Source: Phaeosaccion multiseriatum (lineage: Eukaryota; Protista; Ochrophyta, other classes). Taken from it: a stretch of DNA of 64,000 bases. The notes under the pieces are model-generated. The model saw only the letters and a program-made list of their open reading frames with translations. It was not told the origin of the DNA and made no database searches. The position numbers and the translations under genes were made by a program. The stretch lies in NCBI GenBank assembly GCA_965112735.1, contig OZ218961.1, positions 372,001-436,000 of the forward strand, read 5' to 3'. Of the stretch, positions 15,186 to 42,175 are shown piece by piece (positions within the stretch are counted from its first letter, which is position 1; every line of letters starts with the position of its first letter).

Positions 15186-16190
15186 TCAGCTGTTGTACAT
15201 CTCCACGTTGATGGTGGACACGGGGTTCCTCCAGTCGTAACGCTGCTCCACAAGGGATCCCACTCCGTGGAAGCCTCGGGAGATGTGGACAAAGCCCTCT
15301 CCAGTCCCTCCGGACACGTTGCCAGAATCGGAGGGGCAGGCAGGGCCGGGCATATCCGAGCACTGGCGTATCCAACGCGTTGAGAGAAGGAGGGGGAGGA
15401 GGGTGGAGGGGGGGAGGAGGCGAAGAAGTCAAGGGCAGGAATGAATGGACGAAGGAGGGGGGCGGGTGGTGTTTGTCAGCGCAGTAGCTAACACGGGCTT
15501 CTTCGTAAGAAAGACGAGAAAGCGCTGCCGTTGCTTGGACGCCACCCTGTCTCGTGCCCTCTGCCTCGCTCATACACTAAAGCACATGCAAGCAACATCA
15601 GCGCATAAGACGACGGAAGAAGAGAGCCCCCACACACACATACCAGTTGCTTGGCTGCCCACCACATCACACACACTCACCATCTCAGTGTTCGCCTCCG
15701 TTCCAGCGTCCCAGGCAGGAGCGATGGTGGAGAGACCCTCAGAGCCGAACTGCATGGCGCTGACTCCCATGAAGGCGTCGTTGGTGTTGATGAGCATGGT
15801 CACAACAGAGAAGGCCAGCGTGTCGCAATCGCAGTCCTCGGGCACCGTAAGCATGCCATCCCACGTCTCTCCAGGGAAGAGAGGCCCCTCCCCGACCGTG
15901 TAGCCGCACACAAGGTCGTTCTTTCCCAGGAGCTCCACCAGGGCACTGGGATTGCCGTCCTCGGCGACAATCTGGAGAGGCCCAGATGCCGGCACCATGG
16001 GCTCGAAGATCTTGAATCCCTTGTTGTGCGCCACCGCCACGACGGGGCTGAAGGGCTGGCGGAAGGTGAGGTTGTCCACGGAAACTTTGTAGGTACCGTC
16101 GCAGTGCTTGGTGTGGCCGGCCGCATCAGTGGTAGCTGCGCCGAGGAGAGCGGCGATCATGGTGGTCTTGATGGTTGATGAAGAGAACAT
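15186..16190 (-). CDS. Secreted Spondin_N domain protein, copy 1; exons 15681-16190 and 15186-15362
   Basis: Signal peptide, NLTFRQPFSP, AEDG, TMLINTNDAF, WDAGTEANTE, GEGFVHISRG and YDWRNPV; GT-AG intron. Confidence 0.9.
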
Positions 16191-16947: not shown

Positions 16948-17215
16948 ATGGTCGAGGCTGCGTGCGAGGCGGTGGTGCCGGCCTCGGTGAGGCCCGCAGG
17001 GAGCAGCAAAGTTCAAGAGAATACATGCTGGGCTGTTGCGAATCTGAGCTTTGACAGTACGAACAAAGTTCAAGAGGGGAGGCGGGTGGGTGTGAGGCGG
17101 TCGTCGCGGCCATGACCCCCCATGCAGGCAGGGACAGCGGTGTCCAGGAGAAGGCATGCCCGGCTGTGGTGGCGCTTTTCAGCTGTAGCAACGAGGCCAA
17201 CGCAAGAGCTGTTAG
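16948..17215 (+). pseudogene. Degenerate relic of about 2 ARM repeat units homologous to the array at 33.9-37.4 kb
   Basis: ACEAVV...VQENTCWAVANLSFDSTNK, then a frameshifted second unit (gtccaggagaaggcatgc, aacgaggccaac). Confidence 0.8.
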
Positions 17216-17610: not shown

Positions 17611-18596
17611 TTAGTTGTACAGCTCCACGCTGATGCTGGACACGGGGTTCCTCCAGTCGTAACGCTGCTCCACAAGGGATCCCACTCCGTGGAAGCCTCG
17701 GGAGATGTGGACAAAGCCCTCTCCAGTCCCTCCGGACACGTTGCCAGACTCGGAGGGGCAGGCAGGGCCGGGCATGTCCGAGCACTGGCGTATCCAACGC
17801 GTGAGAGTGGGAGGGGGGGGAGGGTGGAGGGGGGGAGGAGGTGCAGAAGGGCAGGGATGAAAGGACGAAGGGGCGGGGGGTGCGGTGTTTGTCAGCGCAG
17901 TAACAAGGGGCGGCTTCTTGGCAAGATAGACGAGAGAGCGCTGGCCGCCACCCTGTCTCGTGCCCTCTGCCTCGCTCATACACTAAAGCACATGCAAGCA
18001 ACATCAGCGCATAAGACGACGGAAGAAGAGAGCCCCCACACACACATACCAGTTGCTTGGCTGCCCACCACATCACACACACTCACCATCTCAGTGTTCG
18101 CCTCCGTTCCAGCGTCCCAGGCAGGAGCGATGGTGGAGAGACCCTCAGAGCCGAACTGCATGGCGCTGACTCCCATGAAGGCGTCGTTGGTGTTGATGAG
18201 CATGGTCACAGTAGAGAAGGCCAGCGTGTCGCAATCGCAGTCCTCGGACACCGTAAGCATGCCCTCCCACGTCTCTCCAGGGAAGAGAGGCCCCTCCCCG
18301 ACCGTGTAGCCGCACACAAGGTCGTTCTTTCCCAGGAGCTCCACCAGTTCACTGGCATCGCCGTCCTCGGCGACAGTCTGGAGAGGCCCAGATGCCTTCA
18401 CCATGGGCTCGAAGATCTTGAATCCCTTGTTGTGTGCCACCGCCACGACGGGGCTGAAGGGCTGGCGGAAGGTGAGGTTGTCCACGGAAACTTTGTAGGT
18501 ACCGTCGCAGTGCTTGGTGTGACCTTTCGCATCAGTGGTAGCTGCGCCAAGGAGAGCGGCGATCATGGTGGTCTTGATGGTTGATGAAGAGAACAT
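17611..18596 (-). CDS. Secreted Spondin_N domain protein, copy 2 (tandem duplicate, 2 exons)
   Basis: Near-identical to copy 1 including the intron. The duplicated unit is ~14968-16620 versus ~17420-19280. Confidence 0.9.
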
Positions 18597-33773: not shown

Positions 33774-36700
33774 CTACATCCTCGTCCCTCCCTTGCATTC
33801 CAGGCCCAGACCGAGAACTCTCTTCGCCTGGTGTTCGACACCTTCCTCTCCCTTGTGGTACTTCAACGTACCCAATACCGCCTCCACCGCACCCGTGTGG
33901 CCCAGTCTCTTCTTGTTGACCTCATCTACACCCAGATTCGCAACAGCCCAGCATGCCTTCTCTTGGACACCTCTGTCCTCTACGTACTTCACCATGGCCG
34001 TCACCACCGTCTCGCACGCACCCGCCTCGCCCAGTTTCTTCTTGTTGGCCTCATTTACACTCAGATTCACAACAGCCCCGCATGCCTGCTCTTGGACACG
34101 TCTGTCGTCTGCGTTCTTCCCCATGGCCGTCACCACCGCCTTGCACGCACCCGCCTCGCCCAGTCTCTTCTTGTTGGCCTCGTTTCCATTGCTCAGATTC
34201 GCAACAGCCCTGCATGCCTGCTCTTGGACACCTCTGTCCTTTGCGTGCTTCACCATGGCCGTCACCACCGCCTCGCACGCACCCGCCTCGCCCAGTCTCT
34301 TGTTGTTGGCCTCATCTATACTCAGATTCACAACAGCCCCACATGCCTGCTCTTGGACACCTCTGTCCTCTGTGTGCTTCAACATGGCCGTCACCACCGC
34401 CTCGCACGCACCCGCCTCGCCCAGTCTCTTCTTGTTGCCCTCGATTGCACTGCTCAGATTCGCAACAGCCCTGCATGCCCAATACTGGACACCTCTGTCC
34501 TCTGCGTACTTCACCATGGCCTTCACCACCGCCTCGCACGCACCCGCCTCGACCAGTCTCTTGTTGTTGGTCTCGTTTCCACTGCTCAGAGTCACAACAG
34601 CCCCACATGCCTGCTCTTGGACACCTCTGTCCTCTGCGTGCTTCACCATGGCCGTCACCACCGCCTCGCACGCACCCGCCTCGCCCAGTCTCTTGTTGTT
34701 GGTCTCGTTTCCATAGCTCAGATTCGTAACAGCCTGGCATGCCTGCTCTTGGACACCTCTGTCCTCTATGTGCTTCACCATGGCCGTCACCACCGCCTCG
34801 CACGCACCCGCCTCGCCCAGTCTCTTGTTGTTGGTCTCGTTTCCATTGCTCAGATTCGCAACAGCCCTGCATGCCATCTCTTGGACACCTCTGTCCTCTG
34901 CGTGCTTCACCATGACCGTCACCACCGCCTCGCACGCACCCGCCTCGACCAGTCTCTTGTTGTTGGCCTCGTTTCCACTGCTCAGAGTCACAACAGCCCT
35001 GCATGCCTGCTCTTGGACACCTCTGTCCTCTGCGTGCTTCACCATGACCGTCACCACCGCCTCGCACGCACCCGCCTCGCCCAGTCTCTTGTTGTTGGTC
35101 TCGTTTCCACTGCTCAGATTCGCAACAGCCCCGCATGCCATCTCTTGGACACCTCTGTCCTCTGCGTGCTTCACCATGGCCGTCACCACCGCCTCGCACG
35201 CACCCGCCTCGCCCAGTCTCTTGTTGTTGGTCTCGTTTCCACTGCTCAGAGTCGCAACAGCCCAGCATGCCATCTCTTGGACACCTCTGTCCTCTGCGTG
35301 CTTCACCATGGCCGTCACCACCGCCTCGCACGCACCCGCCTCGCCCAGTCTCTTGTTGTTGGTCTCGTTTCCATAGCTCAGATTCGTAACAGCCTGGCAC
35401 GCCTGCTCTTGGACACCTCTGTCCTCTGCGTGCTTCACCATGGCCGTCACCACCGCCTCGCACGCACCCGCCTCGCCCAGTCTCTTGTTGTTGGTCTCGT
35501 TTCCATTGCTCAGATTCGTAACAGCCTGGCATGCCTGCTCTTGGACACCTCTGTCCTCTATGTGCTTCACCATGGCCGTCACCACCGCCTCGCACGCACC
35601 CGCCTCGCCCAGTCTCTTCTCGTTGGTATCATCTACACTCAGAATCGCAACAGCCCCGCATGCCTGCTCTTGGACACCTCTGTCCTCTGCGTGCTTCACC
35701 ATGGCCGTCACCACCGCCTCGCACGCACCCGCCTCGCCCAGTCTCTTGTTGTTGGTCTCGTTGCCACTGCTCAGAGTCGCAACAGCCCAGCATGCCTGCT
35801 CTTGGACACCTCTGTCCTCTGCGTGCTTCACCATGGCCGTCACCACCGCCTCGCACGCACCCGCCTCGCCTAGTCTCTTGTTGTTGGTCTCGTTTCCATA
35901 GCTCAGATTCGTAACAGCCCAGCATGCCTTCTCTTGGACACCTCTGTCCTCTATGTGCTTCACCATGGCCGTCACCACCGCCTCGCACGCACCCGCCTCG
36001 CCCAGTCTCTTCTCGTTGGTATCATCTACACTCAGAATCGCAACAGCCCAGCATGCCTGCTCTTGGACACCTCTGTCCTCTGCGTGCTTCACCATGACCG
36101 TCACCACCGCCTCGCACGCACCCGCCTCGCCCAGTCTCTTGTTGTTGGTCTCGTTTCCACTGCTCAGATTCGCAACAGCCCCGCATGCCATCTCTTGGAC
36201 ACCTCTGTCCTCTGCGTGCTTCACCATGGCCGTCACCACCGCCTCGCACGCACCCGCCTCGCCCAGTCTCTTGTTGTTGGTCTCGTTTCCACTGCTCAGA
36301 GTCGCAACAGCCCAGCATGCCTGCTCTTGGACACCTCTGTCCTCTGCGTGCTTCACCATGGCCGTCACCACCGCCTCGCACGCACCCGCCTCGCCCAGTC
36401 TCTTGTTGTTGGTCTCGTGTCCACTGCTCAGAGTCGCAACAGCCTGGCATGCCTGCTCTTGGACACCTCTGTCCTCTGCGTGCTTCACCATGGCCGTCAC
36501 CACCGCCTCGCACGCACCCGCCTCGCCCAGTCTCTTGTTGTTGGTCTCGTTTCCATTGCTCAGATTCGCAACAGCCCCGCATGCCATCTCTTGGACACCT
36601 CTGTCCTCTGCGTGCTTCACCATGGCCGTCACCACCGCCTCGCACGCACCCGCCTCGCCCAGTCTCTTGTTGTTGGTCTCGTTTCCAGTGCTCAGAGTCG

Positions 36701-39700
36701 CAACAGCCCTGCATGCCTTCTCTTGGACACCTCTGTCCCCTGCGTGCTTCACCATGGCCGTCACCACCGCCTCGCACGCACCCGCCTCGCCCAGTCTCTT
36801 CTCGTTGGTATCATCGACACTCAGAATCGCAACAGCCCTGCATGCCATCTCTTGGACACCTCTGTCCTCTGCGTACTTCACCATGGCCGTCACCACCGCC
36901 TCGCACGCACCCGCCTCGCCCAGTCTCTTGTTGTTGGTATCATCTATACTCAGATTCGCAACAGCCCAGCATGCCATCTCTTGGACACCTCTGTCGTCTG
37001 CGTGCTTCACCATGGCCGTCACCACCGCCTCGCACGCACCCGCCTCGCCCAGTCTCTTGTTGTTGGTCTCGTTTCCACTGCTCAGATTCGTAACAGCTCT
37101 ACATGCCTGCTCTTGGACACCTCTGTCCTCTGCGTGCTTCACCATGACCGTCACCACCGCCTCGCACGCACCCGCCTCGCCCAGTCTCTTGTTGTTGGTA
37201 TCATCTATACTCAGATTCGCAACAGCCTTGCATGCCATCTCTTGGACACCTCTGTCGTCTGCGTGCTTCACCATGGCCGTCACCACCGCCTCGCACGCAC
37301 CCGCCTCGCCCAGTCTCTTGTTGTTGGTATCATCTATACTCAGATTCGCAACAGCCTTGCATGCCTGCTCTTGGATACCTCTGTCCTCTGCGTACTTCAC
37401 CATGGCCGTCACCACCGCCTCGCACGCACCCGCAGCACCGAGCCTGACCCTGACTTCATCGTCGCTGGCCAGGTATAGTACGACGTCAAGCCCTGCTAGT
37501 GCTACATTCACGTCCCCAGCGTGCTTCGAGAGAGCTCGAACCACTTCCTTGCCCATCCCCGCCTGCGCAAGGGGCAAGGCCTCCTCACCTGGACCGAGAC
37601 CGCCAGAGGAGGTGCTCGGACGGGGAAGAGCCGCGATGGCCTTGAGAGCGTGCTGCATCACTTCGCCCACTCCCTCGCCCTCGTAGCTCTGCAGGAGCGC
37701 CACCAAGACGCCGTACTCTCGCCCAGCAAGGGCGCTTGATATATTCCTCTTCACCTCGTCCTTCCCACTGGGTGTAGGCGATGCGCGTCCCTGCTGCTGC
37801 TGGGGCGGTGATGGCGGTACTGCTGGCCACTGGAATGCTGCGAATACTTGGTCCCGTGACGGGGGTACCGAAGAGGGAGAGCCAACTCGCCCTCGGGTTG
37901 CCTTGCTCTTGCCGACAGCGTCGAATCTCCCCCCCTCCTGCCGCTTCCTCGCCTTATCATCCGTAGCTTGGGCATCCGCCTCCCTCTCCTCCTCCTCCTC
38001 CTCCTCCTCCTGTTGCTGCTGGCGAAGCGATGCTGGGCGGGTCCGGCGGCCAACACCTCCACGCGGGTCGCTTCTCTCCTCCACTATGGCGCCCAAAGCT
38101 TGCGAGACGTCGCTGCTGGAGGGTCGCTGGCCTGGGGCCTGCTGCCAGCACTGCCGCATGAGGTCTTCGATGCGCTTGTCCTCTACCACGCATGTCTCCG
38201 GGAGGAGGGGCCTTTCCTTCTTCACGGCCACCCTCCTACATATATGAGCCTGACTCAGTCCTTGAAAGGGAAGCTGGAAGGACAGCATCTCGTACATCAC
38301 CATGCCGAAGCTGTGCAGGAGGGCACGGGCAGCAGTGTGGAAGGAGACGAAGGAACAGCGAAGCGGGTGAGCTAAAGTGGACTACAAGAAGTGACACAGT
38401 GCATTGGCGGCAGTCCGCCGAGGTAGAGAGGTGGCTCCTTAACGAAAGCTTCAGCATGCCCGGCCTGGGAGTGTACGACAGAGAACGAGAGGCACACCTC
38501 ACCCAAAGAGCAAGTTCAAATGCAGCGTCCGCTCAGCCAGCTTGCAAGCAAAGAAATACAGTCATTCACCTACACGCCGCCTCGCTCTCTGCCTCACCTG
38601 TACACATCCGCGGCAGGGGTACCCTTCTCCTCATCCCAAATCTCAGGAGCCATCCAATGATAAGACCCCACCGACTTTGCTCCAGCTGTGCTCATGGAGC
38701 TGCTGCCTGTCTTCATCTGACGAGCGAAAAAGGAGAACAGCAGACGGGGCGGGTAGGAGGTTGGGGCTGGGTGACACGTGGCTGCTGCGTCAGAGAAAGG
38801 CAGGCGAGGAAGTGGGCAGTAGGAGGGCAGCCCCCAAGAGAGCCACCTGTACTATTCCTCTGCTGCTGCCTCTTCTCCGCCACCCTTACCTTGGCCATGC
38901 CAAAGTCGCACACCTTGACCCTATTGCTGGGGTACACGAGGAAGTTCAGGCTCTTGACGTCTCGGTGCAGCACGTCCTCCGCATGGAGGTGGGCCAGGCC
39001 TCGCACACCGTCGTACAGCATCGCCACACGCTCATCCCACGTCGAAGGAGGGGCGTCTGGGCCTCCTTGCTGCTCTCCACCGCCGCACGTTGCGGCGTGC
39101 ATCTGCAGATACTCGTACAAGCTTCCCTCTGGAGCGAGCTCCATCACCACGCACAGCGTGGGCTCCACTGTGCACGCGCCGTACAGAGGCACGATGAAGT
39201 CGTGGCGCAGCCAGTTGTGGACCTTGATTTCGTTGCGGAACTCCTTTAGCTCTTTGGCGCTCAGAGCCGCGCCATTACCGGTGATCACCTTCACTGCCAC
39301 TGTCGTCGTTCTCCGCCACTTGGCGACTCTCACCGCCCCGAAGCTGCCCTGGCCCAGACACCCCGCCGCGCTCTCATCAACCTCGAGGTCGGAAAAATCA
39401 ATCTCCTTGAAGCCTAAGATCCTCTCCCCCGCCTGCAGTCGACTCACCCTCAGCGCCTCCACCACATCCTTGTACCGCTCGTCCATCTTGCTCGTCTTCT
39501 CCTTCTCGTCCTCCAGGTCTTGGAGCAATTTGGTCATGTCCTCCTCTTCGTCCCTTTGACGGTGTGCCTCCTCCTGCTGTGCGGCAAGTCTCGCCCTCAC
39601 CGTCTCGCTCAGCTGAAGGTGCAGTATACACTCATCAAGGCGACTGTGGAATTCCGCAAAGACGCCAATATGTGCCTTGGCGCGGCGCTGGATCTTCCAC

Positions 39701-39954
39701 CACGTCTGAGTTGCGGCATACTCACTGAGCTTGTCCTCAATCTCCCGGACCAGCGCAAGCAGGAAGCGTAGGGCACTATCCCTCTCCTCCTCCCATACCC
39801 CCTCCCTTGTGAGAGCCTGCAGAGGCGCCTCCAGCATCGTGAGCCGGTCAGCGACGCGCTTACACTGCTTGGGGTAGCATTTGACACGCGCTGCGTGGGT
39901 CATGATTGACTGTATACCTGTGAACACCAGACTTACAACAAGCTCGGCCTCCAT
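33774..39954 (-). CDS. MLKL-like N-terminal four-helix bundle + coiled coil + TKL protein kinase + 27 tandem ARM repeats (~1900 aa); exons 38890-39954, 38598-38716 and 33774-38310
   Basis: N-terminus VKCYPKQCKRVADRLTMLEAPLQAL...RLDECILHLQL resembles MLKL_NTD. Kinase motifs GQGSFG, VAVK, HRDVKSLN, DFG, WMAPE and DVYSFG are joined by two GT-AG introns. ARM consensus is LGEAGACEAVVTAM..VQE.AC.AV..LS. Confidence 0.9.
33905..37445 (-). repeat. Coding tandem array of 27 near-identical 129/132-bp units (43/44-aa ARM repeats)
   Basis: Counted from the translation; divergent capping repeats on both sides. Confidence 0.95.
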
Positions 39955-40395
39955 GATCAGCACTACTAGGCTGGGCGATGGTCTTCCCTTCGCTGCACGT
40001 TGTGGTATATATAGTCCTCGTCGTCCAAAAGAAAGACAAGGAGAAATGGGAAGGAAGAAAAAGACGTCCCCCCTTCTCTCTCTCGGTAATTACACTAGCA
40101 CCACCATCGGCCCTTCTTATGCTCTTCGAATGGGGAATTTCCCCCCCCTAATGGATGGCCTCTGGGATCTGAGATACTTTTCATCGTTCGATCCAGATCG
40201 ATCGATCACGCATCGATCACGCAATTCGAAGCAATTTGAACCTAAGGTTACGTATTGTACCATCATCTGCAAGGCCTCCACATCCAGCGTCACAAATGGC
40301 TGAGCTTGACAAGAACTTCTCTTATCTCTCTTCCTCCTCCACAGCCGGTGTATACATAATCTCCTCCACAGCGGGAGGAAGAAGGAGGCGAGGTG

Positions 40396-42175
40396 ATGGC
40401 AAAGCTTGCGGAGATAATCACGCGTTCACCACTCCTGGCAGCAGCTTCAACTCATGCGGACGGTGGCCCCTTGGGCGAGGGCGGGGGCCTGTTCGCTCGC
40501 TTGGGGTTGCGAGACTTGCCTCCCCTGGAAAGTGTGCGAGTCACTCACCATATCGGTGAAGTCAGCAAGACGAGACTGAGCGAGGGCGGCGGCGAGCCTA
40601 CCATCAGCAATGTCATTTTATTTCACTGGAACGGCCGAGTGATCTACACGGCCTTCATTCCAGAGGAGGGGGAGCGGTGGTCGCATATCCGCACGTGCCT
40701 TCTCTTGCTGGACAGCAATCCTTACACGCTGCTCCAAATGGCAGCACAGGAAGAGGAAGAGAAGACGGCCCAAGAAGAGCAACAGAAGCAGCAGCACCAG
40801 CACAAGCAGGAGCAGCACCAGCAAGACACCAACAAGGCCGATGCTCTGCTGCTCTTCGTGTCTGGCGACCGCTCTCAGGTCGGCAAGAGCAGTGCATGCC
40901 TCGGTCTCCTGGGATCCTTGCTCGCGCTGGGCTTCGCTCCCTCCGAGCTGGCCTACATCAAGCCCGCCACCCAGTGCGAGGCGCCCCAGCTCGTCGGGAA
41001 GTGGTGCCACGCCAAGGGAATCCGCGGCAGAGGTACGAAGAGCGTGGACAGATGAGTGATTTCTTTCCACCACTCAATCATTAAACCTAAACAGGGCCCC
41101 ACCCCGCCACACGAGACCGCTTGAAGGGAAGCCAACTTGTAGCGGAGTATAGGAGGGTGGGGGTGTCTTGTTTGTGGCATACGTTGCCCACCTCGATAGA
41201 GCAACTACTGCTCAGGGTACAGCTGTCGTTGACTGCCGTCTGCATCGTGTTAAGGCAGCTCCTCCTCCTCCCCCACTCACCACTGACCCTCCCTTACGTA
41301 CGCATTGACCTGCGCTGTATTCTCGATGCTGCACCATCCCCTTCCTCCCTTTCTCCCCCACTCCTCCACTCCTCACACCCTCACCTCTTCCACCCCCTCA
41401 TCCCCCCACTCCCCCACCCTCTCCTCCCCCACACCCCGCCCCCCACTCCCCGCACTCTCTTCTCTTACCCCCAGGCATTGGCCCTATCGTCTTCTACAAG
41501 GGCTTCACACGTGCCTTCCTCAAGGGGCAGGGCGGCACCTCACATGAGCTTCTGGCGGACGCTGTTGACGCCGTCAGAGACATCGCCCGAGGGAAGCGCC
41601 TCGTCATCGTGGACGGAGTTGGGTACCCCGCAGTTGGGTCCATCTGCGGTGTAAGCAACGCGGATGTGGCGCATGCATTGGGCGCACCGGTGATATTGAT
41701 TGGCAAGCAGGGTGTGGGGGATGCGGTAGACTCGTTCAATCTCAACGCGACCTTCTTCGCCAGCAAGGGGGTGGACGTGTTGGGAGGGGTGTTTAACCGC
41801 ATCAGCGAGAGCGGCTTTTACAGCGTGGACAAGTGCAAGGAGGCCATCAGCTTGTACTTTGCACGCGAGAGGCCCACCCTCATGCCCTATGGCTTTGTAC
41901 CCGAAGTTGCTCCGCTGAGTACAAGTAGCAGTGGCAGCGGGCCTTCTCCTTCTTCGCTGCCGACTGCGGCCGAATCAGCTTCAGCTTCAACCTCAGCGCC
42001 AGTCCAACCCTCGTCTCCTCCTCCTCCTGCTGCTGCTGCTGCTGCTGCTGCTGATGCTGATGCTGCTCCTCCTGCTCCCGCTCCGATGGCAGTAGAGACC
42101 GCAGAAGAACTCGCGAGCCTCTTTGACAACACTACCACCACTACCACCACCACCACTACCACTACCACCACCACC

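Follow-up and report, generated by a model that had tools for sequence, protein, structure and literature searches.

Can a single algal gene hold the sensor, the switch and the executioner of a cell-death pathway in one chain? The question is raised by a locus of the ochrophyte Phaeosaccion multiseriatum, at 33774-39954 (minus strand) in a 64,000-nt stretch of contig OZ218961.1 (assembly GCA_965112735.1); this whole stretch is called the window, and all positions refer to it. A first examination of the DNA without database searches (hereafter the sequence-only reading) had proposed that the locus joins an MLKL-like four-helix bundle (4HB), an intact kinase and an armadillo (ARM) array, and that it is a candidate immune or cell-death receptor. 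Judged on its sequence, the gene is an intact three-exon locus predicted to encode one cytosolic protein of 1,906 aa. This protein is best filed as an MLKL-like kinase fusion carrying a hypervariable ARM array in cis, a kind that is shared at least with Phaeothamnion. Whether it is a receptor is a question of analogy, which we weigh after the evidence for each part.

The identity of the N-terminus is well supported. The Pfam model MLKL_N (PF22215) matches about aa 15-140 with E 3.3e-11 (43.3 bits for a cut-off of 27), and RPW8, Rx_N and SesA appear in the same scan only as sub-threshold echoes. Neither the Pfam scan nor the profile comparison with solved structures gave an above-threshold sequence match to UND, MCAfunc or DUF7792. 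That profile, made of the query N-terminus and seven relatives, retrieved the human and mouse MLKL N-terminal domains (6ZVO, 6ZLE, 4BTF, 2MSV, 6UX8, 6D74, and 6LK5) with E 1.6e-17 to 1e-15. The motif on which the MLKL pattern had originally been recognized (KQCKRVADRLTMLEAPLQAL, aa 29-48) lies in helix 2, where KKQCxRLxxR is aligned with the solved MLKL chains, so that the basic patch K29, K32, R33, and R37 pairs with human K26, R29, R30, and R34. The human MLKL string given in the sequence-only reading does match the solved MLKL chains in this alignment.

Structural comparisons point in the same direction. AlphaFold2, run on that alignment, models a bundle of helices with a long helix behind it (pLDDT 82); the fold is an up-down arrangement of four helices that superposes on the MLKL N-terminal domain. 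Foldseek against the PDB places MLKL executioner-domain chains at ranks 1-9, and MLKL accounts for each of the seven best VIA-align matches (Z 11.2-12.3; rmsd 2.2-3.3 A across 97-122 residues), followed by AtMLKL3 (Z 9.8), the coiled-coil (CC) domain of Sr33 (9.8) and the CC-R domain of NRG1.1 (9.0). In AlphaFold DB Swiss-Prot, the two best matches are mouse and human MLKL. With fold scores and sequence statistics taken together, membership of the N-terminus in the MLKL_N superfamily can be considered secure on sequence and model.

The kinase domain keeps every catalytic motif: GQGSFG (201), VAVK (219), HRD (330), DFG (350), APE (378), DVYSFG (392), and the subdomain-XI Arg, so that the claim of intact VAVK, HRD, DFG and APE holds in the spliced protein. 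Its Ser/Thr-rich activation loop reads SSSMSTAGAKS. The top Pfam model is PK_Tyr_Ser-Thr and the nearest solved sequence is CTR1. Structural comparison of bundle plus kinase was conducted with a model of the Phaeothamnion confervicola homologue (P0045), instead of the window protein itself. Its kinase superposes best on CTR1 (TM 0.92), TAK1, RAF, and RIPK2, and full-length mouse MLKL is the only solved chain that spans both the bundle and the kinase of the model. The domain is thus a TKL-type RD kinase and not a pseudokinase, and is predicted to be active. Between kinase and array, the low-complexity linker of the sequence-only reading is found at aa 471-590; it is disordered and rich in acidic residues, Gln, Pro, and Ser.

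According to Tandem Repeats Finder, a 132-nt unit is repeated 27.2 times with 91% identity between 33877 and 37433, and Pfam Arm (PF00514) matches exon 3 in 19 stretches (E 8.7e-90). The large ARM solenoid of 27 repeats announced by the sequence-only reading is therefore there: segmentation of the protein yields 27 regular 43/44-aa units, preceded by about two divergent N-terminal capping repeats and followed by a degenerate C-terminal one. When aligned with consensus-designed ARM proteins, Vac8, and importin-alpha, these units stay in register.

The distribution of differences among these units is highly uneven. Most of the 44 unit codons are identical across all 27 units, third positions included, whereas as many as seven different residues occur at columns 32, 25, 22, 34, 29, and 28. 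Framework codons have a dS of 0.037 and a dN of 0.038 (dN/dS ~1), and dN reaches 0.40 in the nine most variable codons; half (50%) of the pairwise non-synonymous differences are found in 5/44 codons and 73% in 9/44. Five of the variable columns (22, 25, 28, 29, and 32) lie inside a 120-degree arc of helix H3. Column 29 is the ladder Asn. In the alignment to designed ARM proteins, columns 22 and 25 coincide with Glu30 and Trp33, which are exposed peptide-binding residues also found at the importin-alpha nuclear localization signal (NLS) site (PMC4756613). Repeats at least ~85% identical that vary at predicted binding positions are classed as highly internally conserved, and the array is of this type. 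In P0045, H3 columns 21, 22, 25, 28, 29, 31, and 32 vary, as do others, among only 5-6 units. Diversifying selection on the H3 face is indicated by the unit sequences, not proven.

A second piece of ARM sequence was observed in the window, at 16960-17207 (+). It comprises about two units that are 52-66% identical to array units (CEAVV...VQENTCWAVANLS), with no bundle or kinase near, and is flanked on either side by one copy of a tandemly duplicated 206-aa gene. A related gene that has decayed to this remnant is the probable source.

Do the three parts belong to one product? The ORF listing shows two long minus-strand frames separated by a short gap. The first (38713-39963) runs from the ATG at 39954 through the kinase N-lobe up to DFGMAK, and the second (33774-38303) runs from kinase subdomain IX through 1,500 residues to the stop. 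In silico splicing joins them into one open frame of three exons (CDS 5,721 nt), which has no stop codon other than the terminal one, including over the 27 repeats; the span given in the sequence-only reading corresponds exactly to the distance from start to stop codon. The introns are deduced from canonical splice sites, frame, restored kinase motifs, and colinearity with P0045. Motifs are restored over both junctions (DFGMAK/MKTG... and DVYS/FG, the slash marking the junction), and the spliced product is gap-free at both relative to P0045, in which bundle, kinase and linker start (aa 1-500) are encoded by one exon. Exon 1 and exon 3 each encode a portion of the kinase, so that a real kinase implies that bundle and ARM array must come from the same product. 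The single-chain claim is upheld in this sense, the kinase being complete only with the three exons joined and colinear with P0045.

Four public runs from one sample were inspected over 37300-40400. Introns and upstream intergenic DNA are covered as evenly as exons, and no joints at the proposed splice sites were found in these runs over this interval; the runs are thus genomic DNA. Word depth climbs about 15-60-fold over unique sequence on entering the repeat array (37300-37507), and therefore fits tens of repeat copies.

Two further observations concern the same runs. Short contigs at 37558-37706 (linker), 38723-38772 (intron 1), and 38923-38975 (exon 1), with 1/4 to 2/3 of local depth, differ from the window by 3-6 positions per 50-150 nt. 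They represent either a second haplotype diverged by about 4% or a very close paralogue. In addition, a plus-strand (TCC)12 microsatellite at 37975-38011 codes for the poly-Glu run of the linker; its length may be variable, as DNA-run reads look cut there.

The closest counterpart of the window protein is P0045 (835 aa, GCA_964200195.2), which is unnamed in NCBI and is the only full three-part match among our searches. It is colinear with the window protein, with MLKL_N, connector, kinase, linker, and GACEAV-type ARM repeats, and the two share 38% identity across the first ~440 aligned positions. It differs in three respects. Its ARM units number about six and are more diverged (although its 4-kb contig may cut the array off), its catalytic loop reads HHD (non-RD) where the window protein has HRD, and its introns lie in the linker, whereas those of the window protein lie in the kinase. 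Innate immune receptor kinases include a disproportionate share of non-RD kinases.

Other relatives share only some of the parts. When the N-terminal 195 aa were used as a single-sequence query in an exhaustive search, only five proteins were retrieved at E<=1e-3, and P0045 was not one of them; because even the Phaeothamnion homologue was missed, this search says little on distribution. Three of the five (P0001, P0004, and P0005) are proteins of ~590 aa with MLKL_N, a TKL kinase, and Sel1 repeats. A word-indexed search with exon 1 returned nothing at E<=1e-5. The exon 3 search retrieved many long ARM proteins from stramenopiles and other protists (Tribonema, Ectocarpus, Aureococcus, and Ochromonas), several of which (P0057, P0061, P0068, and P0069) combine kinase and ARM repeats without the bundle; one of the proteins retrieved, P0045, has all three parts. 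CTR1/EDR1-type kinases dominate the matches to P0045, and none of the 120 matches listed is another three-part protein. The closest kinase relatives of P0045 are two metagenome/Logan proteins of ~755 aa (P0071 and P0072), which have tandem kinases and a ~180-aa N-terminus without family match; they were considered as divergent 4HB proteins and rejected, with an hhalign probability of 0.1 against the MLKL_N profile.

Structure-based clusters extend this picture. In the ESM Atlas, the query N-terminus adjoins MLKL_N clusters of Oomycota, and P0045 adjoins MLKL_N-kinase clusters of Basidiomycota and vertebrate MLKL. Among AlphaFold DB (AFDB) fold clusters, the bundle plus kinase of P0045 is matched over both domains by proteins of 700-1,100 aa, the two best (A0A6H5KS20 and A0A6H5JLJ5) being 31-32% identical (745-830 aa); by accession pattern, the list holds brown-algal, rotifer, charophyte, oomycete, and amoebozoan entries. 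Sequences and models thus suggest that the 4HB-kinase module is common across eukaryotes and that the C-terminal solenoid is lineage-dependent.

The sequence-only reading knew of no description of this architecture in an alga. Literature searches are consistent with this, as they returned no paper on MLKL_N-kinase-ARM proteins or on MLKL-like proteins in stramenopile algae, and the words "MLKL" and "armadillo" are both absent from a preprint on the comparative genomics of brown algae. The claim has nevertheless to be narrowed, since the colinear P. confervicola protein was already in NCBI. In addition, 4HB-kinase modules are widespread in eukaryotes, and some plant proteins that are not known to kill also join a 4HB-like bundle to ARM repeats. 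Positions of all predicted parts of the gene are collected in Table 1.

Table 1. Predicted parts of the P. multiseriatum gene, in window positions (slash: exon junction; AF2: AlphaFold2; VIA: VIA-align).
Feature	Position	Strand	Remarks
Whole gene	33774..39954	-	3 exons, 1,906 aa; single terminal stop
Exon 1, aa 1-355	38890..39954	-	4HB, helical connector, kinase N-lobe through DFGMAK; GT donor 38889-38888
Intron 1, 173 nt, GT..AG	38717..38889	-	Junction colinear with Phaeothamnion kinase, which lacks introns there
Exon 2, 119 nt	38598..38716	-	Ser/Thr-rich activation loop, WMAPE, start of subdomain IX
Intron 2, 287 nt, GT..AG	38311..38597	-	Interrupts Ser codon of DVYS/FG
Exon 3	33774..38310	-	Kinase C-lobe end, linker, whole ARM array, one ORF; stop 33774-33776
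MLKL_N four-helix bundle, aa 1-125	39580..39954	-	Pfam PF22215, profile vs PDB MLKL, AF2, Foldseek, VIA
Acidic helical connector ("brace" position), aa 126-185	39400..39579	-	Predicted continuous helix 116-180; 12 K/R, 18 D/E
TKL-type kinase domain, aa 186-470	38085..39399	-	Both introns inside; Pfam PK_Tyr_Ser-Thr, CTR1 nearest solved
Low-complexity linker, aa 471-590	37725..38084	-	Acidic, poly-Q/E, P/S-rich; holds TCC repeat 37975-38011
Divergent N-terminal ARM-like capping repeats, aa 591-688	37431..37724	-	ARM_LRRK2 Pfam stretch starts upstream of regular array
27 near-identical 43/44-aa ARM units, aa 689-1867	33894..37430	-	Hypervariable columns 22, 25, 28, 29, 32 (plus 33/34, 36, 38)
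Degenerate C-terminal capping ARM unit (unit 28), aa 1868-1906	33777..33893	-	Unit alignment

The tandem genes that flank the ARM fragment are near-identical 206-aa ORFs at 15570-16190 (-) and 17976-18596 (-), with a hydrophobic N-terminus (MFSSSTIKTTMIAALLGAATTDA...). The encoded protein looks secreted, and the pair has the appearance of a recent duplication in place.

What could such a protein do? An immune or cell-death role is plausible by analogy with the plant proteins Pm13 and R3AK and with fungal conserved-repeat receptors, and the clustering of variable codons on the ligand-binding face of the array supports it indirectly. The function that we favor, while placing it somewhat short of an even chance, is that of a single-chain intracellular recognition receptor with a built-in executioner, pathogen or virus sensing being included. 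The diversified H3 ladder of the ARM array would recognize something non-self or modified self. By analogy with importin-alpha, its ligand would most likely be an extended peptide or the surface of a protein. Binding would relieve autoinhibition or cluster molecules, and the kinase might then autophosphorylate its Ser/Thr-rich activation loop or the connector, acting in cis as RIPK3 does in trans for animal MLKL. The freed bundle could oligomerize on membranes via its conserved basic helix-2 patch, with ion flux or cell death as the outcome. The NLR-like tripartite design suggested by the sequence-only reading survives as an analogy of layout. It does not survive as a domain composition: no NTPase family was found in Pfam scans of both long exons at E up to 1 (exon 2 lies within the kinase), and membership among NLR/STAND proteins is ruled out by the lack of a NACHT or NB-ARC NTPase.

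Several points weigh against a receptor that kills. We found no functional data on stramenopile MLKL_N proteins. The kinase is nearest to CTR1/TAK1/RAF, not to MLKL. Where the sequence-only reading placed a coiled-coil brace, a helical connector of ~60 aa is present, but it is modelled as a single continuous helix rather than as the two-helix brace of MLKL. When the homologue model is placed on 4BTF, both domains are aligned but with an rmsd of 26.7 and a mismatched inter-domain orientation; domains of this AF2 model are confident and their mutual orientation is unreliable, and its inter-domain geometry was not used. A Z score of ~12 is by itself not decisive for helical bundles, and several plant proteins that are not known to kill begin with this bundle fold too, namely the U-box-ARM ligases PUB12/13/4, MCA1/2, and DUF7792-ARM clusters. 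In AlphaFold DB Swiss-Prot, MCA1/2 and the N-termini of PUB12/13/4 are matched by fold at probability 1.0, and ESM Atlas shape matches include U-box+Arm and DUF7792+Arm plant clusters. For the array, the whole-unit dN/dS is 1.4-1.5 (1.53) with a bootstrap interval of 0.67-5.08; positive selection is undemonstrated, because this interval spans 1 and the variable columns were picked post hoc from the unit alignment. Lastly, the only public runs found behave as DNA, so that transcript support is absent, and the neighboring genes are ordinary, the locus being outside any receptor cluster.

The alternative that survives best, which we regard as possible but rather unlikely, is a signalling or scaffold kinase that does not kill. 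The bundle would then be regulatory, oligomerizing or membrane-targeting, the ARM array would recruit substrates or partners, and repeat variability would result from relaxed constraint together with unequal crossing-over and gene conversion. The main argument for it is the bundle fold shared with PUB12/13/4, MCA1/2 and the U-box+Arm and DUF7792+Arm clusters, to which are added the proximity of the kinase to the signalling kinases CTR1, TAK1, and RAF, a framework dN/dS of about 1, and a whole-unit dN/dS not significantly above 1. At the sequence level, however, the bundle is specifically MLKL_N (E 3e-11, 1e-17), and not UND, MCAfunc, or DUF7792. Moreover, variation is on the H3 stripe while adjacent codons are frozen even at synonymous positions, which drift and conversion do not readily produce, and the known proteins combining MLKL_N and an active kinase for which a phenotype is available are immune proteins (PMC10951266).

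The same machinery might instead serve conspecific self/non-self recognition, such as vegetative or gamete incompatibility or kin recognition, as fungal het-type receptors do. We hold this for improbable, more so than a scaffold kinase. Conserved repeats with hypervariable sites are a hallmark of het-d/het-e/HNWD (PMC4986451, PMC12222747), and the DNA runs contain divergent second-haplotype or paralogue contigs over parts of the gene; such a role is, however, inseparable from the immune one by sequence alone. As for a non-functional locus, that is, an unexpressed, recently expanded or assembly-inflated array on a decaying gene, or exons on separate transcripts, the lack of RNA support in public runs, the difficulty of assembling a 3.5-kb array at 91% identity and the decay of such pieces shown by the fragment at 16960-17207 speak for it, but it is very improbable given a 5.7-kb frame without internal stop over 27 repeats, a kinase that is whole only after joining three exons and is colinear with P0045, capping repeats in place at both ends of the array, and a repeat word depth (~15-60x unique sequence) that fits tens of copies.

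Returning to the receptor with a built-in executioner, a broader proposal can be made, namely that ochrophytes possess a class of NTPase-free, intracellular single-chain immune receptors in which a hypervariable, shuffling ARM array senses ligands, the roles of the NLR switch and of RIPK3 are both taken over by an active kinase, and cell killing falls to an MLKL-type bundle. This generalization is doubtful at present, though not far-fetched. If true, it would represent a self-contained necroptosis-like module beyond animals, plants, and fungi, together with a natural repertoire of modular peptide binders. In animals, necroptosis is carried out by MLKL-type bundles, and a similar executioner role for them is emerging from work on plant immunity. 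In a survey of 67 protists published in 2020, MLKL homologues were not reported, nor were any necroptosis regulators outside vertebrates (PMC7539657). A stramenopile MLKL_N fused to a competent-looking kinase and a diversifying ARM array would extend this machinery to another eukaryotic supergroup, and one polypeptide could serve as a minimal system for dissecting recognition, switching, and execution. An ARM array with a frozen framework and a variable stripe would also be a natural counterpart of engineered modular peptide binders. Even if the protein is a scaffold kinase, the locus still records the recurrent combination of 4HB, kinase, and solenoid (Sel1 in Glomeromycotina, ARM here, U-box-ARM in plants).

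How, then, does this protein compare with known systems? Animal MLKL (2MSV, 6ZVO, and 4BTF) has a homologous four-helix bundle, a helical connector and then a TKL-fold kinase domain, and the basic helix-2 motif K-x-x-C-(K/R)-R-x-x-x-R is conserved between the two. However, animal MLKL is a pseudokinase that depends on RIPK3 as its switch in trans, and its chain stops with the kinase domain, whereas the window kinase keeps its catalytic motifs and is followed by ~1,430 further residues (linker and ARM array). An orthodox MLKL is thus ruled out by the active-type kinase and the added ARM tail.

Plant PUB12/13/4 and DUF7792-ARM proteins likewise start with a helical bundle of this fold, behind which stand a signalling domain, an ARM array, or both. 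Their similarity is at the fold level only, they have a U-box ligase or no enzyme, their ARM repeats are ordinary (~5-12), and no killing activity has been reported for their bundles. PUB12/13 are regulators of immune receptors.

Among fungi, MLKL homologues with Sel1 repeats are reportedly exclusive to Glomeromycotina (PMC8778642). Proteins of this type (P0001, P0004, and P0005) are the closest N-terminal relatives in the exhaustive search. As in the window protein, their MLKL_N bundle and TKL kinase are followed by an alpha-solenoid at the C-terminus, which is made of few Sel1/TPR repeats in ~590 aa, versus a 30-unit ARM array. Fungal NLRs with highly conserved repeats carry hypervariable sites (PMC4986451), and brown-algal LRR-ROCO and NB-ARC-TPR genes are repeat-shuffling candidate receptors (PMC3341825, PMC11378527). 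Like the window protein, fungal HNWD/het-e and brown-algal receptors have near-identical tandem repeats in which variation is limited to predicted binding positions; the repeats of these receptors are interpreted as recognition modules that evolve fast (PMC4986451, PMC3341825, PMC11378527). Their WD40, ANK, TPR or LRR repeats stand behind an NTPase switch, whereas the ARM repeats of the window protein stand behind a kinase, with no NTPase. In addition, brown-algal receptors have one exon per repeat, while all ARM repeats of the window protein are in one exon.

The nearest functional parallels come from plants. Pm13 of Aegilops/wheat consists of an MLKL_NTD, a brace, and a kinase with all catalytic residues; it is needed for resistance, which mutations in each part abolish (PMC10951266). 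It is the 4HB of R3AK that carries out cell death, accompanied by a shift towards higher oligomers, and the sensor is an NLR acting in trans (bioRxiv 10.64898/2026.08.07.743466). Pm13 and R3AK resemble the window protein in their MLKL_NTD, in the position of the brace, and in a kinase with intact catalytic residues, a likeness at the level of architecture and motifs. Both lack a C-terminal repeat sensor, and where R3AK relies on a separate NLR, the window protein carries its candidate sensor in cis.

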